Shown: in pieces, positions 27,249 to 64,000 of the stretch
Position numbering within the stretch: the stretch's first letter is position 1
How the letters are laid out: each line of letters starts with the position of its first letter
The notes under the pieces: model-generated
What the model was told of the DNA's origin: nothing
Databases searched by the model: none
Seen by the model: the letters and a program-made list of their open reading frames with translations, nothing else
Translations under genes and position numbers: made by a program
Origin: Octopus sinensis
Taxonomy: Eukaryota
DNA length: 64,000 nucleotides
Direction of reading: 5' to 3'
NCBI RefSeq assembly: GCF_006345805.1
Contig: NC_043001.1
Span: forward strand, 121,396,001-121,460,000

Positions 27249-27315
27249 AATCCCTCTAAAAGTTTATTAGTGCGAGACATATCCGATTCTGTTTTAAAGC
27301 GGACATTCCAACTAC

Positions 27316-34743: not shown

Positions 34744-37700
34744 TGGTTGGCATCCTTTTTGTCTCGGAGACAATGGAGTTGCGCATAAATAGTCCAGTCC
34801 GGCTTTTATATTTCATATCCTGATTCATTTCCTGCTGTGGCTGTGTAGTCCTATCCTGGACAAACACTCCCTCTGGCAGGTACCGCAAATGTAGCGAAGA
34901 CTGTTCCTGGCTGGTTGTAATGTCATAGTTTCTTGTTGACGTCTCTTCTTTTCTTTCCATTTCTCCTCTCTCTCCCTGTCACTCCTTTGTATTCCCTCTT
35001 TTACGGTACGTTGCCATTCTCCACGGTTGCCGGCAACTGCCTCCCAACCGCTAATATTGATGTTGCAGGCCTTCATGTTCCTTTTGCAAACATCCTTGTA
35101 ACGTAAGATCGGTCTACCCACAGACCTAGTACCCCTAGCAAGCTCACCGTAGAGTATGTCCTTGGGGATTCTGCCATCTTTCATACGGCTAACATACCCA
35201 AGCCATCTCATACGTCTTTGTGTGAGGAGTGCAAACATGCTTGGTATTCCTGCTTGCCTGAGGACATCTTTGTTGGGGATATGATTCTGCTATTTGATGC
35301 GGAGGATTTTTCGGAGGCAGCGCAGGTGAAAGATGTTTAGGTGACGCTCTTGGCGTGTGTATAGCGTCCAAGTCTCACTTCCATACAGTAGAGTGCTGAG
35401 TACACATGCCTGGTAGATCTTCATTTTCGTGGTCTTGATCAGCTTATTGTTGTTCCAAGCCCGTTTGGAGAGTTGGGCCATCGCAGCAGCTGCCTTTCCA
35501 ATGCGTATATTGTGCTCAGCGTCAAGGGATAGGTTGTAGGTGACGGTAGAGCCCAGATAGGTAAACTTCTCCACCTTTTGTAATCTGTGGTCTCCAATAT
35601 GTATGTTTGGGATGTCCGATGTAGCCTGACCCATGATGTTGGTCTTCTTAAGGCTGATAGCTAAGCCAAAGTTGTTACATGCTTGCTCAAAACAGTCAAT
35701 GAGCCTTTGGAGGGCTTCTTCTGTGTGATACCAGAGCGGCATCATCAGCAAATAGCATCTCCTTGATCAGGACGTTTCTGATTTTGGTTTTGGCACACAG
35801 GCGCGAGAGATTGAACAGTTTCCCGTCACTTCTACTGTGCAGAAACACTCCATCATCTGATGTCTGAAAGGTTTGTGAGAGTAAGAGCGAGAAGAAGATG
35901 CCAAACAATGTATGAGCGAGGACACATCCTTGCTTTACCCCGTTTTTTATTTGGAAGGCGGCTGATGTTGAACCGTTGTGCTGTATGGTGCCTTGCATGT
36001 CATCATGGAAAGACTTGATGATCCTCAGCAGCTTTGGTGGACATCCGATTTTTTGGAGCAGGATGAAGAGGCCTGTTCTGCTTACCGAGTCAAAAGCCTC
36101 TGTTAGATCAATGAAAGCCATATATAATGGCATTTTCTGCTCTCTGGACTTCTCCTGAAGTTGGCGTACGGAGAATATCATATCGATAGTTGATCTGCTT
36201 CTTCTAAAGCCACACTGCGATTCCGGATAGATACGAGAAGCAAGTAGTTGTAGCTTTGTCAGGATAACGCGGGCAAAGGTCTTTCCAACAGTGCTTAGAA
36301 GAGATATTCCACGGTAATTGTTACAATCACCACGGTCACCTTTGTTTTTGTAAAGCGTAATGATGTTAGCATCCCGCATATCCTGAGGGACTGTACCCTC
36401 TTCCCAGCACTGACACAGAAGCTCATGAAGATGCCGAAACAGGATGGGGTTTTTGCCGGCTTTGATGATATCTGAGGGGATGCCGTCTTTTCCCGGAGCC
36501 TTAGTTCTTGCTAGGGAGTCAACAGCCTTGGTGAGCTCTGCTATAGATGGCGGACTGTCAAGTTCGCACATGACTGGCAAGATCTTGACACTCTCGACTG
36601 CTGCCTCAGCCACTGTAGTCTCCCGTGAGTAGAGATCCTGGTAGTGCTCCACCCAGCTATCCATTTGCTTGCCTTGATCCGTGATGAGATCTCCAGAGGG
36701 GCTGACTTGGTTGCGGATGGACCGAGGGCCTTCTTCAAACCGGCATACATCCCACAGGTGTCGCCACTGTCAGCAGCTGACTGGATACTCTGACAGATTT
36801 CCTGCCAATACCCATTTGCACAGCGTCTGGCTGTCAGTTGGGTTTTATTTCGTGCCTTTCTGAGTTCTTCGAGGGACTTTGTAGAAGAATCACTCTTGTA
36901 TTGCATCAGAGCTGCACGCTTTGCTTCGATAACTGGCTCCAGCTCTGAGAGCCCAGCATTGAACCAATCTGGGTTTTATCTTTCTCTCATGCCGAAAGTA
37001 TCTATTGATGTCGTATACAAAGCTTCCCTGATATAGTTCCACCTACTTTCAGCAGAGGAGGTTGGGCAGCTACTGAGGGCAACTTTGATAGAAGCAGCAA
37101 AACATTTTTGCAGTGTAGGTTCCGAGGTTCTGGCAGTGTTAATGCGTGGTCGGCCCACTTTCTTGAAGCGATGGACTTTTTTAGGCAGAATCCTCACCCT
37201 ACTTCTAATTAGTGAGTGGTCTGTGTCACAATCCGCGCTGTGGTAACTGCGGGTCAATAGAGTAGAATTCAGAAAGGATCTCCGTGTAATGATGAGATCC
37301 AGCTGATGCCAGTGGTGAGATCTTGGATGTCTCCAAGATGCCTTGTGGGAAGGCTTGTTGGTAAAGAATGTGTTTGTGATGCACAGGTTGTGGTATGTGC
37401 AGAATACGAGTAGTCTCTGACCATTGTCATTCATGTTGCCAATACCAAAGTGTCCAACACAAATGGGCCACGAATCATGGTCAGATCCCACGCGAGCGTT
37501 AAAATCCCCCAGAAGGTAGATATTTTCAGTCGTTGGTATATTTTCTATGACACAGTTGAGATCTTTGTAGAACTGGTACTTGGTCTCCTCTGAGCTGTAG
37601 AGAGTGGGAGCAGAGATGCTGAGTAGATGTACTGAGCCAGAAGAAGTCGAGAGGCGCAGTGAGGGGATACGCTCAGTGCCTCCTGATGGTGGTTCTATTG

Positions 37701-39047: not shown

Positions 39048-39100
39048 CCAGGATATTCAACTCTGAATTTTCCAGTCACGGTTAAAAACTTATGCTCCAT
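39048..39100 (-). CDS. Candidate 53-nt exon (copy B1)
   Basis: CTTTTGCAG|ATGGAGCATAAG...CCTGG|GTAAGC; homologue of 3650-3702. Confidence 0.33.
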
Positions 39101-39850
39101 CTGCAAAAGCCAGATGTGTATATATGTTTATATATATATATATATATGCATACATTAAATTCAAGAAACAAAGTTTGATTTAAAAGCCTTGAGTAGTATA
39201 AAAAGATACAGATAAGGAAATAATTTTACATATGTATGTATTTATGTGTTTAAGCTAATCAGGCTAAACTTTAAAATACCTGTTATCATTTAACAAAATC
39301 GATATCACTATCTACGAAACGTATTGAGCTCACTCACTATTTAAATTGACGTTTTGCATTTCTTGTATAAAATATGCATGTGTGTGTGTGTGTGTGTGAG
39401 TGTATGCATGTGTGCGCGTGTTCAGCGCGCGTGTGTGTGTGTGTTCGGAGAAAAAGAGGGCAGATATCTACTCACGGCTCTTGATATGTTCTCAGCAGGT
39501 TTTTTATATTCGTTGAAAGATTTTAAAATCAAACGAAATGCGAAGGATTTGGTCCAGCCTATGGATTGATATAGAAAATAATTGCTGTATTTATAAATGA
39601 GACACACATCATAGATGCACATAAAACCCACATACGTAGATAAAAATATACATTCATAATCACATATACACTTAAAAATACTATAAGTAAATATATATAT
39701 ACGAATATACAAACTCACATTAATACATCTGCATCTACATGTATAAACACATATATAAATGCATGTTTGTACACATACACAGTTCCATGTATTTATATAT
39801 ATATATGTGTGTGTGTGTGTGTATGTATATATATATATGTATATATATGC

Positions 39851-41429: not shown

Positions 41430-42700
41430 TAGATACTAACTTGACGGTTGTCAATTTCTTAGACGTTTCCTTAGATCTTAATAAGAATATTTATAAGCCT
41501 TATAGGAAGCCCAATGATAGACTAAGTTATATTAATGTAGGTTCATGCCATCCCCCTATAGTATTCAAAAATTTAGTTAAAAATATTAGTAAGAGGATTT
41601 CTAGCCTCTCATCTGATGAGGACATCTTCAATAGCGTTGCCCCAGTTTATAATAAGGCTTTAAAAGATAGTGGTTTTAGCGATAAAATAAAATATACACC
41701 TATCACTAGCCCAACAGTAAAGAAAAGGGATAATAGAAATAGGAAGGTCATCTGGTTTACGCCCCCTTACTCACCCGAGGTGGCCTTCAATATAGGTAAA
41801 TATTTCCTAGCTCTGATAGATAGACATTTTCCAGTTAACCATACTTATAGGAAACTCTTCAATAGACACAATTTAAAAATTAGTTTTAGTTCAACTACCA
41901 ATTTTAAAAACATAATCAAACATAACATACAAAAAACACAAGAAGAAAACAGCTGTTCATGCAGGAATAAAGAATTGTGCCCGCTAAATGGAGCTTGCAT
42001 GTCCAAGACCATCATATATGAAGCTACCGTAAACTCTATAACCACTAAAGACACCGTTTCGACGAAGAAATACGTGGGCCTTACAGAGGGTAATTTCAAG
42101 GCCAGGTTCAATAACCACACTTTGAGCTTTAGGCACTGGAACAAAAGAAAAGCGACACAATTGTCTAATCATATTTGGTCGTTAAGAGATAAAGTTGTCG
42201 ATTATAACATACAATGGAAGATTTTGGCCAGATGTAAGCCCTATACTAACGGCAGCGGAAGGTGCGGTCTATGCGACATGGAGAGATGGCTTATCTGGAA
42301 AAGCAGCTTAGACCCTACTACATGTCTAAATACAAGGACAGAGCTTTTCGGATCATGCCCACATGTGACTAAGTTTCTGTTACGTTTTTGGTCCCCTAAA
42401 GAAAACAGATAGAACATGCTTTCTATGTTATGTCCCAAGAAGAATTTAGATATTTTTATATATTTTTTATATATTTTTTATGTATTTTTATATAATTTTT
42501 ATGACGAAAAATGCGAGCGATGTATAAGTACGCAGGCAAGCAGAGTTATAACAGAGTAATTTCCCTTTATTTAACGGTATTTTTTCATAACGTTTTCAAA
42601 TAGCCAGATAACCGAAGAGATGGTGTTGTGGATTTCCACTTCGGCATCTGAAACTCAGAGTTTTATCTTGACTACCGAGTAATGTAACATATTGTATATA
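41430..42700 (+). mobile_element. Penelope-like element, 5'-truncated: RT thumb plus GIY-YIG endonuclease and 3' pLTR
   Basis: ORF 41441-42412: VNFLDVSLDL, YRKPND, IWFTPPYS, IIYEATV...KYVGLTEGNFKARFNNH, CGLCDMER. Confidence 0.92.
42606..42668 (+). ncRNA. Minimal type I hammerhead-like motif in PLE 3' region (CCGAAGA core)
   Basis: AGATAA-CCGAAGA-GATG..CATC(T)-GAAA-CTCAGAG-TT-TTATCT: 6-bp stem I, 4-bp stem II, short stem III. Confidence 0.55.
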
Positions 42701-48180: not shown

Positions 48181-48232
48181 CCACAGTCTTCACTCTAAAT
48201 GTTGCCGTCACGGTTGAAAGGTCATGCTCAAT
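48181..48232 (-). CDS. Candidate 52-nt exon (copy B2)
   Basis: CTTTTTCAG|ATTGAGCATGAC...TGTGG|GTAAGC; homologue of 3650-3702. Confidence 0.33.
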
Positions 48233-48911: not shown

Positions 48912-49483
48912 CACAAGATTAGTGAATATTTGAGTAGGATTTTATTTACTGTCAGAATCGGAAATTATATCACGGAATATATTAAGACAAAATAGTGGAT
49001 AGAACAGTCTTTTTATTGACCAGCAAAAATTCAGTAAGTTAAAAAAGAAAGTTTCATGTAATAGTTTACTATCAGTAAATGGAGTTGATTGTCTGAATTT
49101 CATGAAACCTCACTATTTATTTGACGTTTCACATTTCTTCTATAAAATATGCATGTGTGTGTGTATGTTGTGCGGAGAGTGTGTATGTGTATGCTTGTGT
49201 GCGCATGTTCAGTGCATATGTGTGCGCGCACGCGCGTCGTGTACGGAGAAGAGAGAGAGAGGACAGATATCTACTCAACGGCTCTTGATATGTTCTCAGC
49301 AGGGATTTTATATTCGTTGAACTTTTTAAAAATCAAACGAAATACGAAGGATTTGGTCCAGCCTATGGATTGATATAGACAATAATCGCTGCGTTTATAA
49401 ATGAGACACACGTCATAGATGCACATAAGACCCACATACATAGATAAAAATATACATTCATAATCACATATACACTTAAATAC

Positions 49484-49811: not shown

Positions 49812-50110
49812 ACACTTATCATACCCTTTCTTCCTGTCGCTCTCTTCGTGTATCGGCTATCAATGCCTGCACATGGATGATTGGTTCCATACATCGATAG
49901 GACCTTTCTTGACTTCCTGTCCAACTCCTTTAGCTTCTCCTCTGTCCACTTCAGTTTTCCAGCATCATTCCGAACTACTGCGGCTGCGTGCGAGTTTATC
50001 GCCGAAATTATGTTCCAGGCATTCAGCTTTCGAACCAATATTTTGCTCACTCGCCAAAAGTGCTCTCTTTTACTCTTTCCCGTCATGTCGTGGTGTTTGA
50101 TTCCATCTGT
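49812..50110 (-). mobile_element. Decayed R4/Dong-type fragment (duplicate of 1786-2078)
   Basis: ORF 49790-50086 is near-identical to the translation of 1786-2078. Confidence 0.7.
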
Positions 50111-50364: not shown

Positions 50365-50526
50365 CAATGAACTCATTCTTGTTACATAAGTGTCCGACGC
50401 AACAACCAGTACAAGACGTGCCATTCGCCCGTTTATTGCATATAAGGGTATTGTTTCTCATAGCTTCAACACATTTTCTGTATGTGCTGCAGGACCTTTC
50501 ATTGATATTGCGAATCGGCATACAGG
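50365..50526 (-). CDS. Exon encoding the C-terminal part of a Ly6/uPAR (three-finger)-like domain
   Basis: TATTATTACAG acceptor, TTG|GTAAGT donor, 162 nt phase 1-1: CMPIRNINERSCSTYRKCVEAMRNNTLICNKRANGTSCTGCCVGHLCNKNEFI, ending in the CCxxxxCN signature. Confidence 0.7.
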
Positions 50527-50788
50527 CTGTAATAATAGATATGAAAATTATACACTACAACAACAATATTTATTAGGACGATTACTGTTAATTACAGCAA
50601 CAACAACAGAAACAACACCACTGGGGATGTTTACCATGCAAGTAAGTTTAATCATTGCTTTAAAATATCCAAAAGCGATAAATGAAACCGTAAAAGATTT
50701 TCCGAATTGTTGAAAGTTAACAGCATAAGCAAACCTCTGTAAAATTTATTGCTATTTAGTATTCAAAAATCATGTTTTAAATGCTTAC

Positions 50789-50877
50789 AGTGTCCAAACC
50801 TCTCGGATCACAAGTAGATATGGCCATCGGCTCACGGTCTGTATCAAAACCGCATCGCACTGTCACACATCGCCCAA
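50789..50877 (-). CDS. Candidate upstream Cys-containing exon
   Basis: TATTTTAAG acceptor, ACT|GTAAGC donor; only one open frame (phase 1-0): GRCVTVRCGFDTDREPMAISTCDPRGLDT. Confidence 0.3.
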
Positions 50878-51954
50878 CTTAAAATAGGTCAAATTATCCC
50901 AATAAAGATGTATCAATTCTCTAAAATTTCTTCTTACTGGAGGAATGCTCAAGAGGAATTTTTCATATAAAATTTACGGAAAAATATGCGTACAAAACTC
51001 ACCAACAAGAGAAACTAATATGCCTTTACCCAAAGATGAAAATGAAATATAATTGTCAGATTGAACTCCTCAGTCCAAGCAAATAAAATAGAAAATACAT
51101 AAAATGAACACAAGAGAAACTTCGTTTTATTTTGCAAGTATATTTTATATGAAAATACGGTATATAAGTATAAAATTTGGAGAGAAAACAACCAAGGTCT
51201 TGTTAACTTAATAAGGGACATTCTGAAAGCGAAAAATATCAGGAATGGAGAAGAATATTTAAAGAAAAGAATCCATCACGAAAACGCAATTAATAATCGC
51301 AAACACCTAACAATAATAAAAGCAATGAAAATGTAGACATTGAAGTTAGAAATAAGATTTGCATTGCCTTAGTTTGAATTGAAACTCGTTTCTTCCAATG
51401 TTGGAAAAGTTTTAGAAAGAAAATTGGATCCCAAACTGAGTGAGGATGTCATGAAAAAATAACCAATGATAGTGTCCGAAGGCTGGCGTCTTCAAAAGAG
51501 CCATTGGAGTCTGTGATTGCAAATGAATGAATCGTTAAATAAGCTAACACAGGTCTGAGATCAAAACGGACAATGAAACAGGCAACAGAATTCAGCCATG
51601 CTCTTATGTCACGCTCTATTCTCCTATATTCTCGTAGATCAGTTAATGTGAAGCATTGATCTGTTTCATTACCCGTGTCTTTTATTGTTTCTCTTGTGTT
51701 TCTTTCACCAATGTACAACTGTGTATTCAGAGATATGCCTGGCAATTTTAATTTGTGTTTTAGCTGCGTTTAATCGTATAGCTTTCATCTATTCCTGTTG
51801 AAATAATATGACCCCCATCAGTTATGTTCTGTGAAGCTTATTGTACTTCTTGATGTGGGGGCAGATTTAATCTGTTTCGAACATTTCATAATCTTGTCTA
51901 TCAAACAACCACTTTTGCTATGGCCAACAGACGAAGGAGACGGTCATTTACTTC

Positions 51955-52140
51955 TTAACTTTTCCTTAATCCGCTCCCTGTAATCTCTGCAAGATGGTAG
52001 GGCCACATCCAACATGCAGTTATCCCCTCTAAGGTTAGTGGCCCGAGGTCATTCGACAAGGAATCTTGATCCCAAGTTGACTTCTGGCCACATACATTCA
52101 TACATCCTACTCTAAGGACAGCCATGTTTTGTCGGAGAAA
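51955..52140 (-). mobile_element. Remnant of the N-terminus of an L1/Tx1-type apurinic endonuclease
   Basis: MAVLRVGCMNVCG resembles the APE start motif (xxNVxG). Confidence 0.45.
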
Positions 52141-52480
52141 GCTCACTTTAAGTTCGTGTGTTCGTTTCTTGAATAGGGATTCCTGGACAGGGTAGAACGT
52201 TGCGTCCTTGAACAAGGCACTTCATTTCACTTTGTCCCAGTCTAATCAAGTGAAATGTGTCCCAACCTAGTGATGTTCAGCTATTTCTCCCTTCTATCGT
52301 CACATCCTTGTTTTCCCATTGAGTCATGAATAAGAAGATCGACAGGGTGTGTGTATGTCTACGCAGGCACATAAAAAAACCTGGCGAAAGCATATTACAA
52401 TCTATGTGGACTTTATGGCTTTTTAGTGACGGCTGTGGATATATTTTAACGAAAAGGAAGAAAGTAATATTCCAGCTTAC

Positions 52481-52566
52481 CTCTGCTTCTGGACAGCTTG
52501 TCACTTCATTGCACATCATTCCTGAACATGTTTGACACTGTAAATTCCGTTGAAATAACGAGTAAT
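52481..52566 (-). CDS. Exon encoding the N-terminal part of a Ly6/uPAR-like domain
   Basis: TTGTATTCTGTAG acceptor, GAG|GTAAGC donor; only open frame is YSLFQRNLQCQTCSGMMCNEVTSCPEAE (CxxC-x4-C-x5-C). Confidence 0.6.
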
Positions 52567-52879
52567 CTACAGAATACAAGTAAATATCTGTATTTATGAA
52601 CCAAATAATGCAATGCATAGCAATAACAAGAAATATTTTCTTTCAGATGTAAAAACAAATGTATGCGTGTTAGTATTGAAATCAATACATGTTAGACATA
52701 TAAATCAAATTATTAACAAAGACTATAAACCTATTTTCATGTTCATTTGGAAACGTTTCAATAATGTCACAAATTCAACTGAGAGAAGCATGAAAGCCAC
52801 TTGTTGTCCTTTTAGTATTCTGATGTAACAAACACGTAAAAATCGTTGAACAAGTCAAATAAAGGGATTAAGTTACAAC

Positions 52880-53075
52880 ATTCTTAAAAAATGTGGGGTT
52901 GGCGTTTGTTCAGGATAAATGTTATATGGTTGTGAAAAGGGCGAAAAATGTAAGCCAGACTAGCAACATCGCCATCAATGACCTGACAGTTTCCCCTATA
53001 TCTGAAGAGGAATGTTACAGATATCTAGGGGTGGTTGAAAATATATCTCATAACAGCACATTAAAGTATAAACAA
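52880..53075 (+). mobile_element. Decayed R4/Dong-type RT fragment
   Basis: GLAFVQDKC...SEEECYRYLGV resembles MKFGLEKC...YKYLGI of the Dong ORF. Confidence 0.6.
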
Positions 53076-53119
53076 AGAACATTACAGCTGAATAAATAAA
53101 ATTGTGCTAGAGGTTTCCA

Positions 53120-56100
53120 AACTGATTTTTGTCGGCGCCTAGAGGGTTTTCTCGTGACGTCGCAGACTTTAGTGATATTAGGGGACTTTAATGCTATCGT
53201 TGACGTACACATCGATAGCGTTGGCTCGATCTATAGGAAAGTGAACTCACGTCTCGTGGATCTGCTTAAGCGGTTTCAGCTAGCAGATCGTTACAGACTT
53301 GACCATCCGAACGTCCAGAGTGGACCTGGATGAGTGGCGACGGAAGGTTCAAGTCTTATCTAGACAGGATAGTGATAAGAACTAGAGATAAGTCTAGTTT
53401 TAGTTGCCCACAGCTCGTCCAGGTGCCCTATACTGACCATAGAATGGTCACGTGTAGACTGGACATAGATAGCACACTTAAGATAGGACCGGCTACTGGA
53501 AGCTGAACAAGTCTATTTTGACACGCGAGGCATACCGTAGCCGGATTAAGGTGTTAGTGCAGAGGGCGTTAACCGGAGCCGTGGTGATAACCGGTGGTGG
53601 TTCACCCTCAAAAGAGCCATTCGATTCGAGTCCATTAGATTTAGTAAACAACTAAGACTAGATTGGCTAGAATAGAAGGGCAACTAGTTAAGAACTTAGA
53701 GGAGGCGTTGAGGTTGGGCTCTGCATCTCACATTTTAGCGGCGAGAACGGCATTAGACCGTCACCTCAAAACCAAACATGAGGGATGTAGAGTCCGGGCT
53801 AAAGTACGAGCATTGGGCCGTGAGGGAATTAATGTTGCCGGATGGGCCCGTACGATAGAAACACAGCGTGGAAACGATGCCACAATTGGGTCTCTTGTTG
53901 ATGAAAACGGATGCACGATCAAGAAGCGGGACGAGAGTGTGTGAGGCACTTCACAAGCACTTCGCCGAGTTGTTCGGGAGGTGCGGGACGCTGGATCATG
54001 GTGAGGCCCTTAGGGACTTCCTGTCTGGTGGCCCGCGCCTCTCGACATGAGAGGCTGAGTGCTGTGAAGGCCAATCACAGCCGAGGAAGTAATCGAGGTG
54101 TTGGGCAAGTGCCCGGGGGAGAAGTCGCCGGGTCTCGATGGTCTGCCCTATGAATTTATAGAAGTATGCCAGACTTGTTCGGGCACCTGCTGGCTAGCGT
54201 CTACGCCAACTGGCAGCAGAATGGGAGAATTCCCAAGTCTGCGAGCCGGGGGGCGGTGAGAGTTGATCAGGAAGGACCCGAACAAGGGGGACGAGATAGG
54301 AACTTCAGGCCCATAACTCTGTTAAACACAGAGTTAAAGATTCTGGCCAAGGTGCTAGCAAAAAGGTTGGCGCGGGTCGTGGACAACTTGTCGGAGAAGC
54401 GCAACGTGCGCTATCCCCGGCAGAACGATCCACGACAATCTCCACCTTATACGCTACTCCTTAGAGAGGGTGGGGAAGCTTTCTGCCGCAGGGGGAGCAC
54501 TGGTACATTTAGATCAGTCCAAAGCATTTGATAGGGTCGACCATCGGTACCTGGCGGCGGTCCTCGGAGAGGCTGGCCTAGGCCCGACCTTTCGAGGTTG
54601 GATCGCTGCTTTGTATAGCGACATCGAGTCTGTAGTCAAGGTGAACGGTTCCTTTTCGAAGCCGTTCAGGATCGAGCGTTCAGTTCGTCAAGGGTGTCCC
54701 CTGTCCTCGCTCCTATACGTATTGGCTCTTGAGCCTTTGCTGCGGAAGTTGGAGGCACTAGGGGGCGCGCCGCATGATCTATGGTGTGGAAGAGGAGCTA
54801 CGGCGTATGCGGATGACACCTCCATCATCGTGGCAGACGAAGGCCAGCTTCCAGTGGTGGAAGAGGCCATCAAAAGCTACGAGGCGGTGGCAGGAGCAAA
54901 GGTTAACAAGGACAAGTCGGTCGGTTTGCAACTCGGCACCTGGAGGGGCAAGCCGATGCCGTCCAATAACGTCGTAGGGCGTTGGACGGAAGGTCCTGTT
55001 AAGCTGCTCGGAGTCTGGTTCGGGCCAGACCTCCAGATTGAGAAAAATTGGAGTGAGGTGGCCAACAAGGTGACCGCTCTAACCCAGACCTGGTCTGGGC
55101 GGGCGTTCCCTGCTAGGGAAGGCGGAGGTGGTGCAGATGTTTATAGCATCAGTAATCACCTACCGTCTGACCGTGGTGCCTTGCCCCGATTTGTGGCTGA
55201 ACAAGTTGGAGAGAATCCTTTTCCGATTTTTGTGGAAAGGAGGAAAGCCACTTGTAAAGCGCTCTGTCTGCTGCCAGAAACCGCTAAAGGGGGGCTAGGG
55301 ATGCCTTGGCTGAGGATGCGAAAAAACGCGTTAAGGTTGAGGCACCTCTGGCTTTACCTGGATGGAGAGCAGGTGTGGTCGCCGCACGTCCGGTTCTACC
55401 TTCCCCAGTTAACATCCCTAACGGACATCGGTGCATGGATCAAGCGGAGACCTAAACTAAACTGAGTGAATGGCATTTGGAGTGCCGTCAGGCGCTCCAG
55501 CTACTATCTCGGGTGGGCAACGCCGGCAACAGGAGTTCCACCACGGATTTCTATAGCGGGTTAGTGGAGATTAAGTCCGAAGACGCCTTGGGGGAGACCC
55601 TGGGCTACGATGAAAATCAGTTGGTCAACCTGTTCCGGAGGACGTTCGGCCGGGGTATCTGGATAATTACCAGAAATCCCTAGCCTGGCAGTGTTCCGTG
55701 CGGCTTTACCTGTTCGCGACAAGCTGTCAAGGCACGGCAGTGCCCGTCGCCGACATGCCCGCGATGTGAGCAGGATAGGGAGACCGTCTTGCACGCATTC
55801 GTGGAGTGTCCGGAGTTATCGGGACTGAAAGCTTTGTTGAACAACTTTGTCAGTGATGGGAAGAGTACAGCTATCAGCTGAGTCTATCATCGAGATTGTG
55901 CCGCCCCCTTCCTTAACAGGGAAAGAAAGGCTTGTTTTTTCTGTGTAGTAGCCATACTGAAAGAAACAGTATGGAAGAGCGTACGAAAGGTATAGTGACA
56001 GGCACCTTTGTCTCCGGCCAGGGGTTGATTAACTTTTTTAGTTACCACCTATTAGCAAAATCAGGCTGGAGAAGAGGTGTCTGTCACGAGATATGTTTGT

Positions 56101-56340
56101 GAAAAGATGGAAGCCTGTGGCATACAAGATGGGTATGTTGGCACCAGGTAAGTGTGACCGGATCAGAAAGTAAAGGTTCACCCGGATGGCTGGGTGTCCG
56201 TCCTTCGACATGATCATTAATATTTTTAAACATTGCCTTCGTAAAATTTATTGTTTATAATCTTATCCGTAATTTCATTCGAAAATTGTAACTGTGTTAA
56301 GCTACTTCACCCTTTATATTTGTCTGTTTGTTTGTCCCCT
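53120..56340 (+). mobile_element. L1/Tx1-clade LINE ORF2, 5'-truncated, frameshifted
   Basis: ILGDFNA, SYLDRI, TDHRMV (APE); KSPGLDGLPYEFY, FRPITLLNTELKILAK, LDQSKAFDRVDH, VRQGCPLS, AYADDT (RT); CPRCEQDRETVLHAFVECP knuckle. Confidence 0.93.
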
Positions 56341-56379
56341 CTTTTAAATGCCTAAATGGCAAATTATATGAAATAAAGT

Positions 56380-56770
56380 AGCTTGCGTAACGAACAAACA
56401 TGGTTCCGGGTTCAGTCCCACTGCGTGGACCTTGGGCAAGTGTCTTCTACTATAGCCTCGGGCCGACCAAAGCCTTGTGAGTGGATTTGGTAGACGGAAA
56501 CTGAAAGAAGCCCGTCGTATATATGTATCTATATATATATACGTATGTGTATGTGTATATGTTTGTATATCTGTGTTTGTCCCCCCAACATTGCTTGACA
56601 ACCGATGGTGGTGTGTTTACGTCCTCGTAACTTAGCGGTTCGGCAAAAGAGACCGATAGAATAAGTACTAGGCTTACAAAGAATAAGTCCTGGGGTCGAT
56701 TTGCTCGACTAAAAGGTGGTGCCCCAGTATGGCCACAGTCAAATGACTGAAACAAGTAACAGAGAAATGA
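56380..56770 (+). mobile_element. tRNA-derived SINE (family of 39851-40275)
   Basis: GGTTCAGTCCCACTGCGTGGACCTTGGGCAAGTGTCTT...GAATAAGTCCTGGGGTCGATTTGCTCGACTAAA. Confidence 0.88.
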
Positions 56771-57011
56771 GAGAGTATATGTAACGATATGGATTTGTTG
56801 GGAAGGCTGCAATGCTCTTGTTCGAGGGTCAGCAATTGTAATGGTAGAGGATTGTTGAAGTCGAGAGTCACTAATTGCAGCGGGAGAAATTGATTAGTAA
56901 ACATTATTATGATGGTGTTGAAATCAGCAGTTGTGACGATAATAATTAATTATTATAACAGCATACTGTAGGATGTGAAAGATGAACAATTCGTGAAGTT
57001 TTAAGATAGTA

Positions 57012-57252
57012 TTTATTTACCTATTTCTTTACTACCCACAAGGGGCTAAACACAGAGGGGACGAACAAGGACAGACACACGGATTAAGTCGATTACATCG
57101 ACTCCAGTCCGTAACTGGTACTTATTTTATCGACCCCGAAAGGATGAAAGGCAAAGTCGACCTCGGCGGAATTTGAACTCAAAACGTAACGGCAGACGAA
57201 ATACGGCTACGCATTTCCCCCGGCGTGCTAACGTTTCAGCCAGCTCGCCGCT
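57012..57252 (-). mobile_element. tRNA-derived SINE with Nin/Deu-like central domain
   Basis: Minus strand GCGGCGAGCTGGCTGAAACGTTAG...GAGTTCAAATTCCGCCGAGGTCGACTTTGCCTTTCATCCTTTCGGGGTCGATAAAATAAGTACCAG; related pieces at 60735-60845 and 61590-61705. Confidence 0.82.
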
Positions 57253-57844
57253 GATAGTATTTATTTACCGTTACGTTACAATACCTTGCCTGGACGAGCA
57301 GGTTATGATAAATCCAAAAGCATGCGAAGTAAAGTTTGGGCTTGTGTCCTCTTCATTGTTTAGTAGTAATTACAGAGAGAGATAGAATGATGTCGTAAGA
57401 GAATAGAATTAGAGCTAGTGAGAGTCGTAGGGTTGTGGGACGTTGTCTCACAGTTGCTGACAGTAAACTTCATTTCTCCCTCTGACCAAGGTTCTTGCTG
57501 GTCAGCCAGACTTCGTTCTCACTGAGTTGTCACCGAAGTGACTAACCGATTTCTGCTTGGGATGTGCTTGCTTATATAACTATCCAGAAGGATAGATATA
57601 TCATTAAATAAAGAGGGTTGGTGAAGGACGTGCGAGTCGCTCTTTCCGTCTTTGACGTCTCCGATCTTGCCTTTTAACGCCTGTTATTTTCCATCTTGTC
57701 TGTTCCCTTGACTATGGCATGCCACTATTTTTGGCGGTCCTTGGCTATTGTCATTCAGGTATTTGGATCAATGGAGCGGCGGAGGGGAGTGACCTTGAGT
57801 TAGTCATGGAAACGGAATCCGTTTGGTATGGTGCCTAGGGCATC

Positions 57845-59960
57845 AGGTCATTCCTGATCGAAACAGACCTACGATCAAAGATTTTCCAGCTGTGACCATC
57901 TCAACTATTTTTGAGACTTAGTGCATTTCTACATTATCTAACAGACGTAGAGGTCTTGGTAAGTAAAAAAACAATTCCTGAGCGTTCCGTTCTCCCTCTA
58001 TTTTTATGTTCCGGGGGTAGTAAATAACAAAAGCCATAAACAAGACCACGTAGCTCTCATCTGCAGTTACCAGTAAATGTCCACTATGTGGTGTAGGGTT
58101 GTAAATCTGGAGCAGGGATTCCCAAAATGTGTTTTGCAAAACTCCAGGGTTCCCTGAAACTTATCAGGGGTTCCACGCTTTTAAAAATAAGGCCCAGGAT
58201 AGAACTGACTAGAGGACACTGATCCAACGAGTAACCGAGAGTCGACTTCGACTGAGCGGATAGATAGATAGTAGGTATATGTTTCTTGTGGGGTCCGGGG
58301 ACAGCAAATGGAAGGGCAACTCCGGCGGCACACACTCTAGTTACGCTAGTGGGACCGAGCATTCCAATATAAGCACCACCTATGGAGCAGGCTACAGTAA
58401 GGTAGCCACACAATTTTGTAACTGTTATTTCTACGTAGTGGGTAGACAGAAATTATTTTAAGTAAAAACAAATTTATACATGGGTAAGAGATCATCGAAT
58501 GATTGGGGGTGCACAAGAACCAAATAAAGAGGAGACGGGGTCGAAAACAGCACCACCAACACAAGTACCAGCACCAGCAGTATCAAAATCATCATCATCA
58601 GCAGCAGCAGCAGCGCCACCACCACCACCACCACAATAACAAAGATAAATTGACGGGAAAGACGGGTTATATTCTATTTAAAGGGAGATAACAATCACTA
58701 ACGTTGGTGTCTTCTTTTAAGTTGTGTCCCTTGAATTAATTGTACTTTTGAAAAAAAATTTCATTCTTCGCTTTTTTACGTTTATCTTTCCGCTCTTTTA
58801 ACGACCACGTGGTTTCAGCCGTGACCCCCCACTTCTTATATTAACGAATAACGTATTTAAGACTACATTAATCCCTTGTATTCTGCTTCGTCATTGCTTT
58901 CTAGCCCCATCAGTCAAGCCTGATCGAGGAAAATTATCATCTCAGATCTACCAGCCGTGACCCTCACGTCATAGTGTATCTATAGCTACATCTAATGTAA
59001 AGTATAGTAGTTAGTATAAGTGGATATAGTTGTTGTTGTTGTGGTGGTTGCTGTTCACCCCCAAGTCTGTCCTTGGGTTAAACAAAGATGCTCCAACCAC
59101 GACCATCACATCTATTATCAAGACATAGTGTGTCTAGGGATACATTATTTAATGTATAGTTTAATAGTTAGCATTAGTGGCTATAACTGTTGTTATTCTT
59201 CTTCTTGTTTAGCCCCAGGTCAGGCTTATTTCATACCTATGATCAAAACTGTTCCAGCTGTGGTCATCGCATCTTTTATTCAGTCATAGTGTATCTAGGA
59301 CTACATTATCTAATGTATAGTATAGGAGTTAGTGGCTATAATTAGTGGCTATAATTAGTGGCTATAATTGCTGTAGTTTTTTAACCCCAGGTCATTCCTG
59401 ATCGAAACAGACCTACGATCAAAGATGTTCCGGCTGTGACCATCTCAACTATTTTTGAGACTTAGTGCATCTCTACATTATCAAACAGACGTAGAGGTCT
59501 TGGTAATTTAAAAAAAACAATTCCTGAGCGTTCCGTTCTCCCTCTATTTTTATGTTCCGGGGGTAGTAAATAACGAAAGCCCAGGATAGAACTGACTAGA
59601 AGACACTGATCCAACGAGTAACCGAGAGTCGACTTCGACTGAGCGGATAGATAGATAGTAGGTATATGTTTCTTGTGGGGTCCGGGGGCGGCAAATGGAA
59701 GGGCAACTCCGGCGGCACACACTCTAGTTACGCTAGTGGGACCGAGCATTCCAATATAAGCACCACCTATGGAGCAGGCTACAGTAAGGTAGCCACACAA
59801 TTTTGTAACTGTTATTTCTACGTAGTGGGTAGACAGAAATTATTTTATGTAAAAAAAAAAAAAAAATTATACATGGGTAAGAGATCATCGAATCATTGGG
59901 GGTACACAAGAACCAAATAAAGAGTGGGCAGGGTCGAAAACAGCACCTGTACCAGCACCA
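57845..59960. repeat. Direct duplication of a 570-730-bp module (57845-58580 and 59388-59960)
   Basis: CAGGTCATTCCTGATCGAAACAGACC...CCCAGGATAGAACTGACTAG...GGCTACAGTAAGGTAGCC...GGGTCGAAAACAGCACC in both; copy 2 lacks about 160 bp. Confidence 0.92.
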
Positions 59961-60089
59961 CCACCACCACCACCGCCGCAACCGCCGGTTCCCGGTTCAA
60001 TCCCACTGCGTGCCACCTTGGGCAAGTGCTTTCTACTACAGTCTTGGATATAAATATATATAAGTGTGTGTGTGTGTGTGTGTGTGAGT

Positions 60090-60125
<36 letters not shown>

Positions 60126-60151
60126 ATATATATATATATATATATATATTT

Positions 60152-60190
<39 letters not shown>

Positions 60191-60221
60191 TAGAAGATAG
60201 ATAGATAGATAGATATTTGTA

Positions 60222-60620
60222 TAGGCGTGGCTGTGTGGTAAGTAGCTTGCTTACGAACCACATGGTTCCGGCTTCAGTCCCACTGCGGGGCACCTTGGGC
60301 AAGTGTCTTCTACTATAGCCTTTGGCCGACCAAAGCCTTGTGAGTGGATCTGGTAGGCAGAAACTGAAAGAAGCCCATCATGTGTGTGTGTGTGTGTGTG
60401 TGAACGTGTGTCTTTGTGTTTGTCCCCCACAACCGCTTGACAACTGGTGTTGGTGTATTTACTTTCCCGTAACATTAGCGGTTCGGAAAAACAAACCGGT
60501 AGATTAAGTACTACGCTTTACAAAAATATTAACATGAACTGAGGGTGAAAAGATCGACTAAAATCCTTAAAGGCAGTGCTCCATCTTGGCCGCTGTCTAA
60601 TGACCGAAAGAAATAAAATA
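60222..60620 (+). mobile_element. tRNA-derived SINE (family of 39851-40275)
   Basis: GGCGTGGCTGTGTGGTAAGTAGCTTGCTTACGAACCACATGGTTCCGGCTTCAGTCCCACTGC head. Confidence 0.85.
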
Positions 60621-60849
60621 TAGAAGATAACATAAACTTTACCTGCATTAATAGAGGAATTCTATGTTGCAAAAGATTACACCGACCCCAGTGCGTAATG
60701 GTACTTGTTTTATCTATAATTTTGGAAACATACAACCGTAATCGACTTAATCCGTTTGTCTGTCCTTGTTTGTCCCCCCTGTGTTTAGCCCCTTGTGGGT
60801 AGTAAGGAAATAGGTATTTCGTCTGCTGTTACGTTCTGAGTTCAATATA

Positions 60850-61590
60850 ATATAATAATAATAATGAAATTATTGTATACAGTGCTCAGGTGCACCACAA
60901 CTTGTCAGAAAGTGCATATAAAGTACATGCAGTAATGTAGAAATGTCTGGAAAGCGAACAATGTATGAGTCAGATACATGCTTGTGTGTGTATGGAGGGG
61001 AGAAAATCAGGTTAGTGTTGGCGAATCTTAGAAGCATGGAAGTTTTGAAGGATGCAGTGCTCCGACAACTAACAACTGATGCTGCAGTTTGTTCCATGCT
61101 TTAGCAACTCTCAGCGTAGAAAAATGTTTCCTGAAGTCATGGGAGCTGTGTTGTTTTCTTACTTTGTAAATATGTCCACGGGTGTTAGATGGGTGGAGTT
61201 TGAAAAGGTGCTCAGATTTATTGTTTGTACGATGGTTGATAATTTTATGGGTGTCTGCCAAGTCAGCTGCCAGACGTCTGAGTTTCAATGTGTCCATGCC
61301 CAGGGAAGTAAGGCGTTCAGGATATGGCAAATGCCTGATGGAGGGTATTCTTTTGGTTGCACGTCGCTGAACAGCTTCCAGACGATTGATATCCTGAGCA
61401 AAATAAGGGTTCCAGACCGGTGATGCAAATTCCAGGTGAGGTCTTACCATAGCTATATAAAGCCGCAGATAGATAGCCGGAGAGCGGCTCACAAAGGATT
61501 TGGTGAGTGATGCCAAGACACCCTCAGCCTTCTTGACAATTTTAGCAATGTGTTTTGTCCAACGCAAATCACTGTCGACAATAATACCCA
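60850..61590 (-). mobile_element. CR1-clade LINE 3' fragment
   Basis: ORF 61028-61567: MVRPHLEFASPVWNP..DINRLEAVQRRATK..RGHIYK..RVAKAWNKL; short ATT-repeat tail at about 60845-60865. Confidence 0.9.
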
Positions 61591-61912
61591 GATTCCGCCG
61601 AGGTCAACTTTGCCTTCCATCATTTCTGGGTCAATTAAATAAGTACCAGTTACGCACTGGGGTCGATGTAATCGATTTAATCCGTTTATCTGTCCTTGTT
61701 TGTCACAAAAAGTTACATCGATAAAGATGGCACTGAACATAAGATGAAAGACAAACCAGACATCGAAGTCATCTCAGATTCCCTTGATGGTAACACTTGT
61801 GTTCCTTTTCAAATATTACGACACTAATTTATGGGCAGGTGTGTCTCGTCCTAATTTGGTTGATGTTTACGCTTCGTTCTCAGTTCTGAAGACGATGAAT
61901 ATCGTCCATATA

Positions 61913-63470
61913 CAGTGGGGGGAAATAATATTCGTACATGTCAAAATTCTTTATTTATTTAATTTCTAATGAACATAAACGGGATATACCAATACTATAT
62001 TTGCATACACATGCATCAACTAAGAATTTGCAAAAGAAACTAATAAATTATAGTAACTAAGGAATTTATATTCAATTATAAATATTTAGGGGTGAAAAAA
62101 GTATTCATACAGAGCATAAGTAACTGATAATTCTATGATACTTCGTAGCATAACCATTATTCAGTTCCACTTCAACCAATCTCTTCTTGTAGTTCTTAAT
62201 CAATGACTCCCATATTTCTTTAGGAATTTTTTCCCATTCTTCTTGACAAATTTTCTTCAAATCTCCAATGTACGTTGGGGCTCTTGAATGAATTTTAATT
62301 TTCAAATAACGCCACAAATTTCAATGGGGTTCAAATCAGGTGACTGTCTTGGCCATTCTAATAATTTTATATTGTGATCAACAATCCATTTTTTTGGTAG
62401 ACATCGCCGTGTGCTTAGGGTCGTTACCCTGTTGTAAAACCCACCCTTCACAAAGCTGGTGCTTTTCTACAGAGTCCCATAAACTATTGTTCAAAATATT
62501 TTGGTACATCTCTGCATTCATTCTACCATCTATCACATGTAAATTGCCAGTACCATTTGCAGAGAAACACCCCCACGCCATGATGTTTCCACCTCCAAAC
62601 TTTACTGTAGGAATTGTGTTTTTCCTCCAAACATGGTTAAGCGAATTTCGTCCAAACAATTCAATTTTCGACTCGTCTGTCCATAGAACATTTTCCCAGA
62701 ATGTATCAGATTTATCGTTATGTTCATAAACAAATTTTAAACGGGCATCTCTATGCCTTTTAATCAACAGCGGAGTTTTTCTAAGAGTGCATTACTTCAG
62801 TTCATTCCTATGAAGTTCATTGCTGATTGTTCGTAGTGTAACACTAGTCCCTGAAGCTAACAAATCTTCTTTCAACTCCTTTCTGGTGATCATTGCGTTT
62901 TTTCCGATTCTTCGCTTCATTTTTATTAATGATCTAGGGGGAAATCTTGCGTGGTGGACCGGATCTTATTCTGTTTTCAACAATTCCCGATTCTTTATAT
63001 ATTTGAATAAATGAAGATATGGTAGTAAATGGAATACAAAGGGTCTCTGATATTTTCCCGTAACTTTTACCTGCTTTCCATTGTTCAATAATTAAATTTT
63101 TCACAGAATTTGTGAGTTTTTTTTTACTTTTCGCCATTATTACGATACTGCTTTATGTTGTCTCAGTGCTGAATGAAGAAGCTAATGTTTTGGCACTTAA
63201 AAATGACAGCTGATAAGATTATTGGAACAAACGAGAAAGTTCTAGAAAAAAAAATTAACAGTATTTTGTGGCATAGAAAATCATAAATTTATTCTGTGCG
63301 AATACTTTTTTCACCCCTAAATATTTATGATTGTATATAAATTCCTTAGTTATTATAATTTATCAGTTTCTTTTGCATATTCTTTGTTTATGCATGTGTA
63401 TGAAATTATAGTCTTGGTATATCCTAAATGAAGAATTTTGACATGTACGAATATTTATTTCCCCCTACTG
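61913..63470 (-). mobile_element. Tc1 (DD34E-type) DNA transposon with long IR/DR TIRs, defective transposase
   Basis: TA|CAGTGGGGGGAAATAATATTCGTACATGTCAAAATT ... TTTTGACATGTACGAATATTTATTTCCCCCTACTG|TA; TIRs about 175-190 bp; HTH start 63137, [32 protein letters not shown], with frameshifts. Confidence 0.93.
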
Positions 63471-63847
63471 TATTCTCCATCTTCCAGTAGATTTCACTCA
63501 ATGTTGTGCTCATGAGTAAAACACGTCATTTCATGTTGCTCCAGTCCACCCAGCCGGCAAAACGAGTAACCCTGCGACAGAAAGACAATTCGACTAATTG
63601 GGAAATATATAAATCACGAGAACCGGGAAAACGGAAACATGAGTCTGTATGAGTCCGGAACGATCTTCATGCTTTATCATTTATAGTGGAGGTACATTGC
63701 TTAGGAGTTAGGGCATTGCACTCACAATCATGAGATTCTGATTTCGATTCTTGGACTGGGCGACTTGTTACTTTCTTGACTAAAATTTTTCATTCTACTT
63801 TGTTCCATTCCTCTCCATGAAAACACTTCATTCCACATTCATCCAGT

Positions 63848-64000
63848 GGAGGCACATGGCCTAGTGGTTAGAGCAGCGGACTCGCGGTCGAGGGGTCGCG
63901 GGTTCGAATCTCAGACAGGGTGATGTATGTGTTTATAAGCGAAACACCTAAGCTCCATGCGGCTCCAGCAGAAGGTAATGGCGAACTTCTGTTGACTCTT
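63848..64000 (+). mobile_element. tRNA-derived SINE head (family of 9899-10288), runs off the window
   Basis: GGAGGCACATGGCCTAGTGGTTAGAGCAGCGGACTCGCGG...GGTTCGAATCTC followed by the AAACACCTAAGCTCCA body. Confidence 0.85.

Follow-up and report, generated by a model that had tools for sequence, protein, structure and literature searches.

Two partial, probably decaying copies of octopus adhesion-receptor exons encoding a LYPD1-like three-finger domain at one Octopus sinensis locus

Results

Exons of the minus-strand copy

We analysed a stretch of 64,000 nucleotides of the Octopus sinensis genome (CM016863.1, ~121.396-121.460 Mb; hereafter the window, with positions counted within it). RefSeq already annotates LOC115212069 here, an "uncharacterized protein" locus called protein-coding with two isoforms (X1 and X2), and places no other gene within 10 kb of it. 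Window 50521-50365 matches the X2 protein (P0001) at 100% identity, and the remaining exons of X2 also lie inside the window. Thus, the gene is not "hidden", as a preliminary description had it: X2 starts inside the second of the two exons described there. The coding exons of the minus-strand copy are:

52481-52566, minus strand: exon LU-a (exon 1), first half of the 12-Cys domain, (N)YSLFQRNLQCQTCSGMMCNEVTSCPEAE; in neither RefSeq CDS
50365-50526, minus strand: exon LU-b (exon 2), second half of the three-finger domain, with a 22-nt deletion (junction ~50501-50498)
49825-50086, minus strand: first coding exon of X1 (MTGKSKREHFW...), transposon-derived, resembling the tail of a LINE ORF
49280-49362, minus strand: exon B1 (WTKSFVFRLIFKKFNEYKIPAENISRA), start of a ferredoxin-like domain after the three-finger domain; in X2
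48181-48232, minus strand: exon C1 (IEHDLSTVTATFRVKTVG), partner of B1; absent from the RefSeq models
39476-39558, minus strand: exon B2 (WTKSFAFRLILKSFNEYKKPAENISRA), internal duplicate of B1; in X1
39048-39100, minus strand: exon C2 (MEHKFLTVTGKFRVEYPG); in both RefSeq isoforms
33322-33404, minus strand: exon D, short form (VQSQLRRNISQVLNKFQALLNMNLLDE)
31863-31915, minus strand: terminal coding exon E (SSSTGNGTEDRTAETNF and a stop)

The two three-finger exons are real, as first described: sequences, splice sites and homology to paralogs agree. Exon 1 (acceptor ...tctgtag/, donor GAG/gtaagc) is an intact ORF that starts in phase 1 and ends in phase 0. It is 75-84% identical to P0012, P0013, P0014, P0018 and P0007 (tblastn) and 90% identical in DNA to the O. 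bimaculoides locus L002. Exon 2 is bounded by the acceptor ...attacag/ and the donor ATTG/gtaagt. The count of 12 Cys holds, 4 in exon 1 and 8 in exon 2, and they are the same cysteines as in the family consensus. An exhaustive HMMER scan with the exon-2 peptide matched 21 proteins at E<=1e-3 (best E 4e-45), so its pattern is not due to chance. In the frame first proposed, exon 2 reads CMPIRNINERSCSTYRKCVEAMRNNTLICNKRANGTSCTGCCVGHLCNKNEFIG, with all 8 Cys, whereas direct translation in phase 0 gives PVCRFAISMKGPAAHTENVLKL followed by a stop. The phase conflict between the exons is therefore genuine.

The downstream exons differ in quality. The donor of B1 is weak (GTTGAG), and a "long D" exon is missing after C1; the collinearity of the window with the paralog locus L003 ends just before the long D exon of L003. 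The tail encoded by exon E is hydrophilic and holds no transmembrane or GPI-signal-like stretch. In the exons 3' of the deletion, frames are still open and splice sites sound, so that the minus copy could yield a truncated product. Its introns contain transposon ORFs. Pieces similar to the first exon of X1 recur in the window at 15853-16053, 19146-19418 and 23395-23541, and a 255-aa ORF at 18939-19706 carries the same motif.

A 22-nt deletion breaks the three-finger domain

We compared exon 2 with the paralog/ortholog loci L001, L002 and L003 in a DNA alignment (A2). The window copy has a 22-nt gap between TGAA repeats. Intact paralogs (P0007, P0008 and P0010) read exon 2 in phase 0, PVCRFAISMNGAKLKTERSC..., across the lesion, and every intact relative joins ...PGAE directly to PVCRF.... 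Loss of these 22 nt thus accounts for both the phase clash and the broken domain. An indel at about 50495-50526 was among the solutions of the preliminary description: its location and the phase-0 frame (PVCRFAISM) were right and its size was not, since 22 nt are gone rather than one. The other two solutions proposed there fall away. An upstream acceptor at 50554, which would add CIIFISIITA, is ruled out because all intact relatives splice ...AE/PVC...; the 28 nt concerned are conserved intron (polypyrimidine tract) at four loci. The direct junction of PGAE to PVCRF likewise leaves no place for a missed exon between exons 1 and 2. An alternative phase-0 acceptor within exon 2 (..catacag/AAATGT), giving a 10-Cys product, is supported by no relative.

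No uninterrupted frame runs through the domain at the window locus, and on its sequence this copy would be incapable of encoding an intact domain. The sister copies are frameshifted as well, L003 by a 1-nt deletion and the plus-strand copy by an extra G. Errors in the assembly could account for the 22-nt deletion and for the extra G of the plus copy; the TGAA microhomology speaks, short of proof, for a real 22-nt deletion.

X2 begins at an ATG at 50521, inside exon 2. Its +1 frame is foreign to the intact family and rejoins the ancestral one past the deletion; the first nine residues of the exon-2 peptide as originally given (CMPIRNINE) belong to an unused frame too. The start codon of X1 lies in the transposon-derived exon. 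The X1 and X2 ORFs are probably opportunistic calls and not a working Ly6-type protein.

A mirror copy on the plus strand

The window contains a second copy in the opposite orientation:

1289-1388, no strand: 100-N scaffold gap that truncates the plus copy
1389-1517, plus strand: mirror copy of exon LU-b limited to its 3'-most 129 nt, the 5' side being cut by the assembly gap
2568-9245, plus strand: rest of the mirror copy, with B' 2568-2657, C' 3650-3703, the long form of D' 7627-7785 and E' 9198-9245 (tblastn)

The repeat of the 3' part of exon 2 at 1389-1517 had been noticed before; it lies directly after the gap, on the left of which a reverse-transcriptase ORF (686-1273) is unrelated to the gene. 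It differs from exon LU-b by one extra G (G-run 1451-1454), a frameshift, and by one substitution (E to D). The similarity extends well beyond this exon: in the inverted arms, 1389-3965 corresponds to 50492-47928 and 7685-10600 to 33399-30922, with copies of all downstream exons. Mirror exons B' to E' are 62-95% identical in protein to X2 and P0014.

That the plus copy begins exactly at a scaffold gap raises the question of an assembly artefact, in which a haplotig or a misjoined contig was inverted beside the gap. The related O. vulgaris locus L005, which spans the 3' exons only, could be taken the same way, as its inverted terminal-exon copies stand in a different order and only ~5 kb apart. 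On the contrary, both window copies lie within a single gap-free stretch (1389-64000), and the arms are only 82-97% identical with many indels, a divergence far above the allelic. Exon content differs as well: the plus copy has a single B/C set and the long D, the minus copy a duplicated B/C set and the short D. We consider an artefact highly improbable. The two inverted copies are a genuine tail-to-tail duplication, partial and diverged, which bears out the earlier view of a lineage-specific locus duplicated as a convergent pair; all relatives with a checked source come from Octopus.

The domain is an internal module of octopus adhesion receptors

The 21 relatives found in the HMMER scan come from Octopus in all 12 cases where the source name was checked. 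A further 3 come from Logan/ENA assemblies. A third search for homologs, run with the domain profile, brought in no taxa other than Octopus. All long relatives carry the 12-Cys domain internally, directly after the LRRCT. The family order is signal peptide, LRRNT, LRRs, LRRCT, 12-Cys domain, ferredoxin-like domain, HRM, GAIN/GPS, a 7TM domain (7tm_2) of the secretin/adhesion class and sometimes a C-terminal Death domain, with Pfam matches in the long relatives to LRR_8, HRM, GPS, 7tm_2 and Death. Full-length relatives are adhesion GPCRs (class B2), with GPS at E ~1e-13 and 7tm_2 at E 1e-24 to 1e-42, and their source names read "adhesion G-protein coupled receptor G6-like / GPR126-like" (ADGRG6). 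P0014 and P0017, two relatives that look intact, share the ...SSSTGNGTEDRTAETNF tail and have no 7TM domain. Judging by these sequences, soluble isoforms of the receptor family may be genuine.

We searched the window with 14 family proteins (tblastn) and found no LRR, LRRCT, HRM, GPS or 7TM exons. Positions 52567-64000 gave no LRR or LRRCT match even at E<=50, and no LRR or signal-peptide exon was found within the 11.4 kb upstream of exon 1. By comparison, an LRRCT exon lies 4.2 kb upstream of exon 1 in O. bimaculoides L002, and L001 also has LRR/LRRCT exons. The match in gene order to O. bimaculoides breaks off ~300 nt before exon 1; an upstream LRR/signal-peptide exon could lie beyond position 64000. 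Inside the window, then, there is neither the LRR/LRRCT upstream of the 12-Cys domain that marks the octopus LRR subfamily nor the GAIN/GPS plus 7tm_2 that marks an adhesion GPCR. Because the GPS and 7tm_2 exons are lacking, the locus represents part of a family member rather than a receptor gene in its own right.

The locus does have the features of an unprocessed pseudogene or gene fragment: introns and paralog collinearity are kept (92-97% with L003, which lies on another scaffold), together with lesions and lost exons (HRM, long D).

Fold of the 12-Cys domain

In the intact family, the domain spans 79 residues encoded by two exons, with the consensus C-x2-C-x4-C-x7-C-x5-C-x15-C-x5-C-x10-C-x8-C-x2-CC-x4-CN. 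This is the LU cysteine framework (LxCxxC, CCxxxxCN and 8-10 or more Cys in LU spacing). Curated profiles did not recognize it. Against Pfam, four splice variants of the window peptide gave nothing significant (UPAR_LY6_2, E=0.78), and intact paralog domains gave only sub-threshold matches: Activin_recp 7e-4, Toxin_TOLIP 0.077, UPAR_LY6_2 1.1 and CD59 0.57. The LU profile hit expected from the preliminary description was thus absent at threshold from window peptide and paralogs alike, yet the sub-threshold matches all fall within the three-finger clan.

We examined the fold using an intact paralog domain in place of the broken window copy. A profile of 16 intact domains matched LYPD1/Lynx2 (6zss) best, at full length, with 12/12 Cys aligned and E=0.077. 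The AlphaFold2 model of an intact paralog domain (pLDDT 72.2, pTM 0.61) also found Lynx2 6zss as its top Foldseek match (TM 0.62/0.65, probability 1.00). The best 50 matches were all three-finger, at E of only ~0.08-1.5, and included LYPD6, uPAR, Prod1, PSCA, CD59, GPIHBP1, TGF-beta/activin receptor ectodomains and snake three-finger toxins. With profile and predicted fold both pointing to LYPD1/Lynx2, the LU assignment of the preliminary description is upheld: the 12-Cys domain is, as modelled, LU-like with a LYPD1-type three-finger fold, at marginal E-values (0.08) and on a medium-confidence model.

The spacer after the 12-Cys domain gave a confident model (pLDDT 87.6) with the order beta-alpha-beta-beta-alpha-beta. 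Foldseek returned generic ferredoxin-like folds only, so that a specific SEA-domain assignment was dropped and "SEA-like" stays an impression.

Discussion

In our reading, the window very probably contains two tail-to-tail, partial, decaying copies of ectodomain exons of an octopus-specific adhesion GPCR, of which the minus copy is most plausibly a transcribed pseudogene or a gene fragment. What remains of the minus copy is the pair of three-finger exons, the ferredoxin-like-domain exons in duplicate and an alternative terminal exon. Exon 2 lacks 22 nt, a deletion at TGAA microhomology that frameshifts the domain; LRR/signal-peptide exons are absent from the 11.4 kb upstream, HRM, GPS and 7TM exons from the window, and transposon pieces riddle the copy. 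From these lesions, we infer that the minus-strand copy has lost its function.

The preliminary description had proposed instead a stand-alone, lineage-specific, recently duplicated Ly6/uPAR gene, encoding a secreted or GPI-anchored modulator or a toxin-like protein. The LxCxxC...CCxxxxCN framework and the LYPD1-like fold speak for this, as does the name "ly6/PLAUR domain-containing protein 1-like" that RefSeq gives to one family fragment. However, the domain is known only as an internal module of LRR-containing adhesion GPCRs, which explains why no signal-peptide exon stands beside the LU exons. Exon 1 starts in phase 1 (...QN/YSLFQRN) as the continuation of an LRRCT, not of a signal peptide, and the residues before the domain in the relatives are LRRCT (..YSQCQN/YSLFQRN). 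The exon after the domain encodes the ferredoxin-like domain and not a GPI signal; by inspection and homology, the locus has neither a signal-peptide exon of its own nor a GPI signal or stop after the domain. With the frame broken by the 22-nt deletion on top of this, we give a stand-alone Ly6 gene next to no credence.

A functional truncated gene deserves more weight and still seems unlikely to us. It would encode a soluble three-finger and ferredoxin-like protein, for example a decoy or modulator of the receptor family. The RefSeq models, two isoforms in all, are protein-coding, and such calls usually imply RNA support; exon 1 is intact with good splice sites; the hydrophilic tails of P0014 and P0017 suggest that soluble forms exist; and in O. 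bimaculoides P0008 the frame stays open across both three-finger exons. Yet such a gene requires an unannotated upstream signal-peptide exon, and a 22-nt deletion that is either erroneous in the assembly or tolerated. The deletion lies between direct repeats, as is typical of real deletions, and the 11.4 kb upstream hold no signal-peptide, LRR or LRRCT exon, O. bimaculoides collinearity being lost within ~300 nt. X1 begins in a transposon-derived exon, X2 in a non-family frame, and the sister copies are frameshifted. A wider version of the idea is more doubtful still: that the truncated three-finger and ferredoxin-like copies scattered through octopus genomes, this locus included, are still active and yield soluble or decoy ectodomain fragments. 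In the arm nerve cord, sucker and skin, these would modulate signalling by the octopus-specific LRR adhesion GPCRs.

If the locus is a decayed receptor fragment, as we favor, it is an annotated decayed duplicate, to be left out of any tally of new genes or toxin-like factors, and counts of cephalopod "Ly6-like" genes will be inflated by receptor fragments. LOC115212069, LOC115226165 and LOC118760947 become recognisable as fragments of the receptor family. The cysteine-rich stretch of the octopus adhesion-GPCR expansion can now be labelled as a LYPD1-like three-finger domain and, after it, a ferredoxin-like domain, both of which current Pfam models miss, and these labels provide a concrete handle on the ligands of octopus receptors. 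In intact receptors, the three-finger module, which occupies the place of the Ig domain in vertebrate ADGRA receptors, would most likely serve in extracellular binding.

In its passages on LRR and Death domains, Ritschard et al. 2019 (PMC6408891) describes an octopus-specific expansion of adhesion GPCRs with these domains, and does not use "Ly6" there. As far as those passages go, our family would correspond to their "group 3": the relatives show the LRR, GPS, 7tm_2 and occasional Death domains reported, and the window exons are 70-93% identical in protein to the corresponding exons of the receptors. The window copy differs in lacking the defining GPS and 7TM parts. It is more safely said that a LYPD1-type three-finger domain in such receptors is a combination that a non-exhaustive literature search did not find described for adhesion GPCRs.

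Among three-finger proteins, activin/TGF-beta receptor ectodomains share the fold, the CCxxxxCN box and a place in a larger receptor. Activin_recp gave the best Pfam signal (6/16 intact domains, best E=7e-4, full-length match), and ACVR1, ALK5 and TbRII were among the PDB matches. In contrast, all Pfam matches stay below the gathering threshold, the LYPD1 Cys spacing fits better, and no kinase or single-pass transmembrane exon follows; the relatives being adhesion GPCRs, we rejected a TGF-beta type I receptor gene, to which the ACVR1 match had pointed. Human LYPD1/Lynx2 (6zss) has the same 12 Cys, including the extra pair in the third finger, all of which align, and has xCxxC at the N-terminus and CCxxxxCN at the C-terminus in common with the octopus domain. 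LYPD1 differs in that it is a small GPI-anchored protein, consists of a single domain and brings a signal peptide of its own, whereas the octopus domain is an internal receptor module. Sequence identity is ~25%, and the window copy is frameshifted.

In overall logic, the octopus receptors resemble the vertebrate receptors ADGRA2 and ADGRA3 (GPR124/GPR125), which combine LRR, LRRCT, a small disulfide-rich domain, HRM, GAIN and 7TM. The octopus proteins are named by RefSeq after ADGRG6 instead, and where ADGRA receptors have an Ig domain, they carry the three-finger and ferredoxin-like domains.

An annotated locus with two cysteine-rich exons

The preliminary description proposed a hidden, stand-alone Ly6/uPAR gene. 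Sequence, splice sites and translation bear out its two spliced minus-strand exons and its 12 cysteines (four in exon 1, eight in exon 2 as then framed). The start of exon 1 is in phase 1 and its end in phase 0, whereas exon 2 in that frame requires phase 1: the phase clash is therefore genuine. In phase 0, exon 2 translates to PVCRFAISMKGPAAHTENVLKL, ending in a stop.

Exons, RefSeq models and retroelement ORFs of the window
52566-52481, minus: exon 1; acceptor ...tctgtag, donor gtaagc; reads (N)YSLFQRNLQCQTCSGMMCNEVTSCPEAE
50526-50365, minus: exon 2; acceptor ...attacag, donor gtaagt; reads CMPIRNINERSCSTYRKCVEAMRNNTLICNKRANGTSCTGCCVGHLCNKNEFIG in the preliminary frame
49362-49280 with 48232-48181, minus: first B/C exon pair
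39558-39476 with 39100-39048, minus: second B/C exon pair
33404-33322, minus: short D exon
50521-50365, 49362-49280, 39100-39048, 33404-33322, 31915-31863, minus: coding exons of RefSeq X2
50086-49825, 39558-39476, then the final three exons of X2, minus: coding exons of RefSeq X1
686-1273 (plus), 34825-37491 (minus), 41441-42412 (plus), 54470-55465 (plus), 61028-61567 (minus): retroelement ORFs, including reverse transcriptase

The window corresponds to CM016863.1:121,396,001-121,460,000. The joined peptide matched a single protein at 100% identity, 'uncharacterized protein LOC115212069 isoform X2 [Octopus sinensis]' (RefSeq). Exon 2 is already coding in X2 and is therefore not hidden; exon 1 is absent from the coding sequences of both X1 and X2. 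The annotated ORFs of the locus have no signal peptide. The first coding exon of X1 resembles the end of a LINE-type ORF (cf. the 255-aa ORF at 18939-19706); it has a mirror at 1809-2070 (plus) and similar pieces at 15853-16053, 19146-19418 and 23395-23541. This makes the X1 protein a chimera of transposon and receptor fragment.

The domain belongs to a family of adhesion GPCRs

With the exon-2 peptide as query, HMMER searched 1.84 billion representative proteins exhaustively and returned only 21 proteins at E<=1e-3. The long relatives, from O. vulgaris and O. bimaculoides, are named 'adhesion G-protein coupled receptor G6-like' or 'GPR126-like' in their source, and in four of them Pfam found LRR_8/LRR_4, HRM, GPS and 7tm_2. 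The 12-cysteine domain sits internally in these receptors, which argues against a stand-alone gene. The intact order is signal peptide, LRRNT, LRRs, LRRCT, 12-cysteine domain, a domain of ~95 residues, HRM, GAIN/GPS and 7TM, the LRRCT reading ...CGCHLPAFV...YSQCQN and the 12-cysteine domain YSLFQRNLQCQTC...CCVGHLCN. No signal-peptide exon lies beside exon 1 because the preceding residues continue the LRRCT; in intact genes the signal peptide is encoded hundreds of residues earlier. Intact members are thus shown to be multidomain adhesion GPCRs.

A Death domain on a GPCR is an unusual pairing. P0028, a full-length O. bimaculoides relative (XP_014788728 cluster), carries one at its C-terminus, past the 7TM (residues 1203-1277, Pfam E=3e-6). 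Ritschard et al. 2019 (PMC6408891) describe an octopus-specific adhesion-GPCR expansion, 'group 3', expressed in axial nerve cord, suckers and skin; of its 22 members, 5 have LRRs and one has a Death domain. P0028 is consistent with that single case. The proteins found here fit 'group 3' by description. In P0007, a 195-aa O. vulgaris hypothetical protein, the gene model runs exon 2, exon 1, exon 2, suggesting local tandem duplication of the three-finger exons or a chimeric model.

A 22-nt deletion explains the phase clash

We compared the exon junction across the intact relatives (P0007, P0008, P0010 and P0012-P0029). All read ...C-P-x-x-E / P-V-C-R-F-A-I-S-M-N-G-A-K-L-K-T-E-R-S-C-S-T-Y..., so the frame of exon 2 from the 50526 acceptor is phase 0. 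This direct join leaves two suggested remedies for the clash, an upstream acceptor at 50554 and a missed exon between exons 1 and 2, unsupported. The third, a 1-nt indel, was right in kind but not in size. In a DNA alignment with two O. sinensis loci, L001 and the paralog L003, and the O. bimaculoides locus L002, 22 nt (in L003, TGAACGGTGCTAAACTGAAGAC) are missing from exon 2 of the window, the gap being flanked by two TGAA repeats. This loss shifts the frame by one, so that the 5' end of exon 2 looks phase 0 and the remainder phase 1. The lesion takes NGAKLKT out of the second finger, and the three-finger domain of the window copy is untranslatable from exon 1 onward. The 'CMPIRNINE' start given to the exon-2 peptide is out of frame; its cysteine falls by chance one residue from the true PVC cysteine.

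Damage extends to the sister loci. In L003 (9924-10203; CM016887.1, LOC115226165) this exon has lost 1 nt, and P0002, the RefSeq protein of that locus, likewise starts at the internal out-of-frame ATG: L003 is therefore another damaged fragment that carries a protein annotation.

The window copy is probably a partial, decaying duplicate

On the minus strand, tblastn with 14 family proteins recovered exons 1 and 2, both B/C pairs, the short D exon and the terminal exon. No LRR, LRRCT, HRM, GPS or 7TM exon was found in the window (LRRCT even at E<=50), and no other RefSeq gene lies within 10 kb of the locus. In O. bimaculoides, 4.2 kb separate exon 1 from an LRRCT exon upstream of it; the window stays collinear with that locus for only ~300 nt beyond exon 1 in the same direction. 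The sole similarity remaining there, 52870-53059 with L002:8188-8372, is in opposite orientation and hints at a rearrangement or shared repeat. L003, on a different chromosome-scale scaffold, retains HRM exons; its blocks of 92-97% identity cover a large part of the minus copy (window ~31-51 kb).

Introns and flanks are full of reverse-transcriptase and other transposon ORFs. The ORF at 686-1273 extends up to a 100-N gap, a possible cause of the break in the contig. Between 14662 and 19696, transposon ORFs are carried by direct repeats as long as 1.75 kb (14666-16403 and 17959-19696, 96%; 0.6-kb partial copy, 16422-17020). Long ATT/TAT microsatellite blocks (17016-17243, 21978-22232, 23542-24105, 24923-25232) and a TCTT array of ~1.1 kb (11876-12981) were also seen.

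The broken frame, missing exons, transposon infill and collinearity with L003 together form the pattern of a partial, unprocessed duplicate in decay. The window copy is most likely a transcribed pseudogene or fragment, its family assignment being surer than this statement as a whole. The main rival, a functional soluble fragment, appears unlikely.

The convergent inverted pair is a real duplication

The final 129 nt of exon 2 recur, as first noticed, at 1389-1517 (plus), with one extra G and one substitution, directly past the gap (1289-1388) that bounds the plus copy on its 5' side. Self-comparison extended both arms of the proposed convergent inverted pair: 1389-3965 pairs with 50492-47928 (82% identity over a gapped alignment, blocks up to 95%) and 7685-10600 with 33399-30922 (88-98%). 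The plus arm has its own B', C', long D' and E' exons, and ~22.6 kb separates the terminal exons. Both copies occupy a single stretch free of gaps, their exon content differs and their sequences diverge by 3-18%; the pair is therefore a genuine duplication rather than a haplotig. At the O. vulgaris locus L005 (CATOCA020000001.1:1830250-1868328, ~21157-30221), inverted copies of the terminal-exon region lie ~5 kb apart in an order unlike the window, and its gene model, P0011, joins the same two terminal exons to one encoding a Death domain. The region appears structurally unstable.

A LYPD1-like module and its neighbor

In intact relatives, the domain that follows the three-finger module, encoded by the B, C and D exons (P0014, 556-655), gave a confident model (pLDDT 87.6) with a beta-alpha-beta-beta-alpha-beta order; the window counterparts are both B/C pairs and the short D exon, and RefSeq X2 encodes a short form without the third strand. 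No Pfam model detected this domain, and Foldseek returned generic ferredoxin-like folds only. Its place in the ectodomain of an adhesion GPCR makes a SEA-type domain a plausible guess.

For the 12-cysteine domain, we aligned 16 intact copies (17 invariant columns, including most cysteines). Against PDB sequences, the profile best matched LYPD1/Lynx2 (6zss; E=0.077, end to end, 12/12 cysteines aligned), then ACVR1. An AlphaFold2 model from the alignment (pLDDT 72, pTM 0.61) consisted mainly of beta-strands with a single helix at residues 53-62; its top Foldseek match in the PDB was again 6zss (TM 0.62/0.65, probability 1.00), and all 50 best matches were three-finger proteins. RefSeq names one family fragment 'ly6/PLAUR domain-containing protein 1-like'. 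Pfam matches of the intact domains all belonged to the three-finger clan (Activin_recp in 6/16, best 7e-4; Toxin_TOLIP, UPAR_LY6_2, CD59) but were sub-threshold and fell short of formal Pfam membership. No number is strong alone; the lines of evidence are unanimous and support the proposed LU fold for the family.

LU domains and TGF-beta receptor ectodomains are protein-binding units and, by analogy, the three-finger module in the ectodomain of the intact receptors would be one too. The locus was already annotated, the receptor family published and the fold known. In a limited literature search we found no paper explicitly stating a LYPD1-type three-finger domain in octopus adhesion GPCRs, and its recognition inside these receptors may be new.
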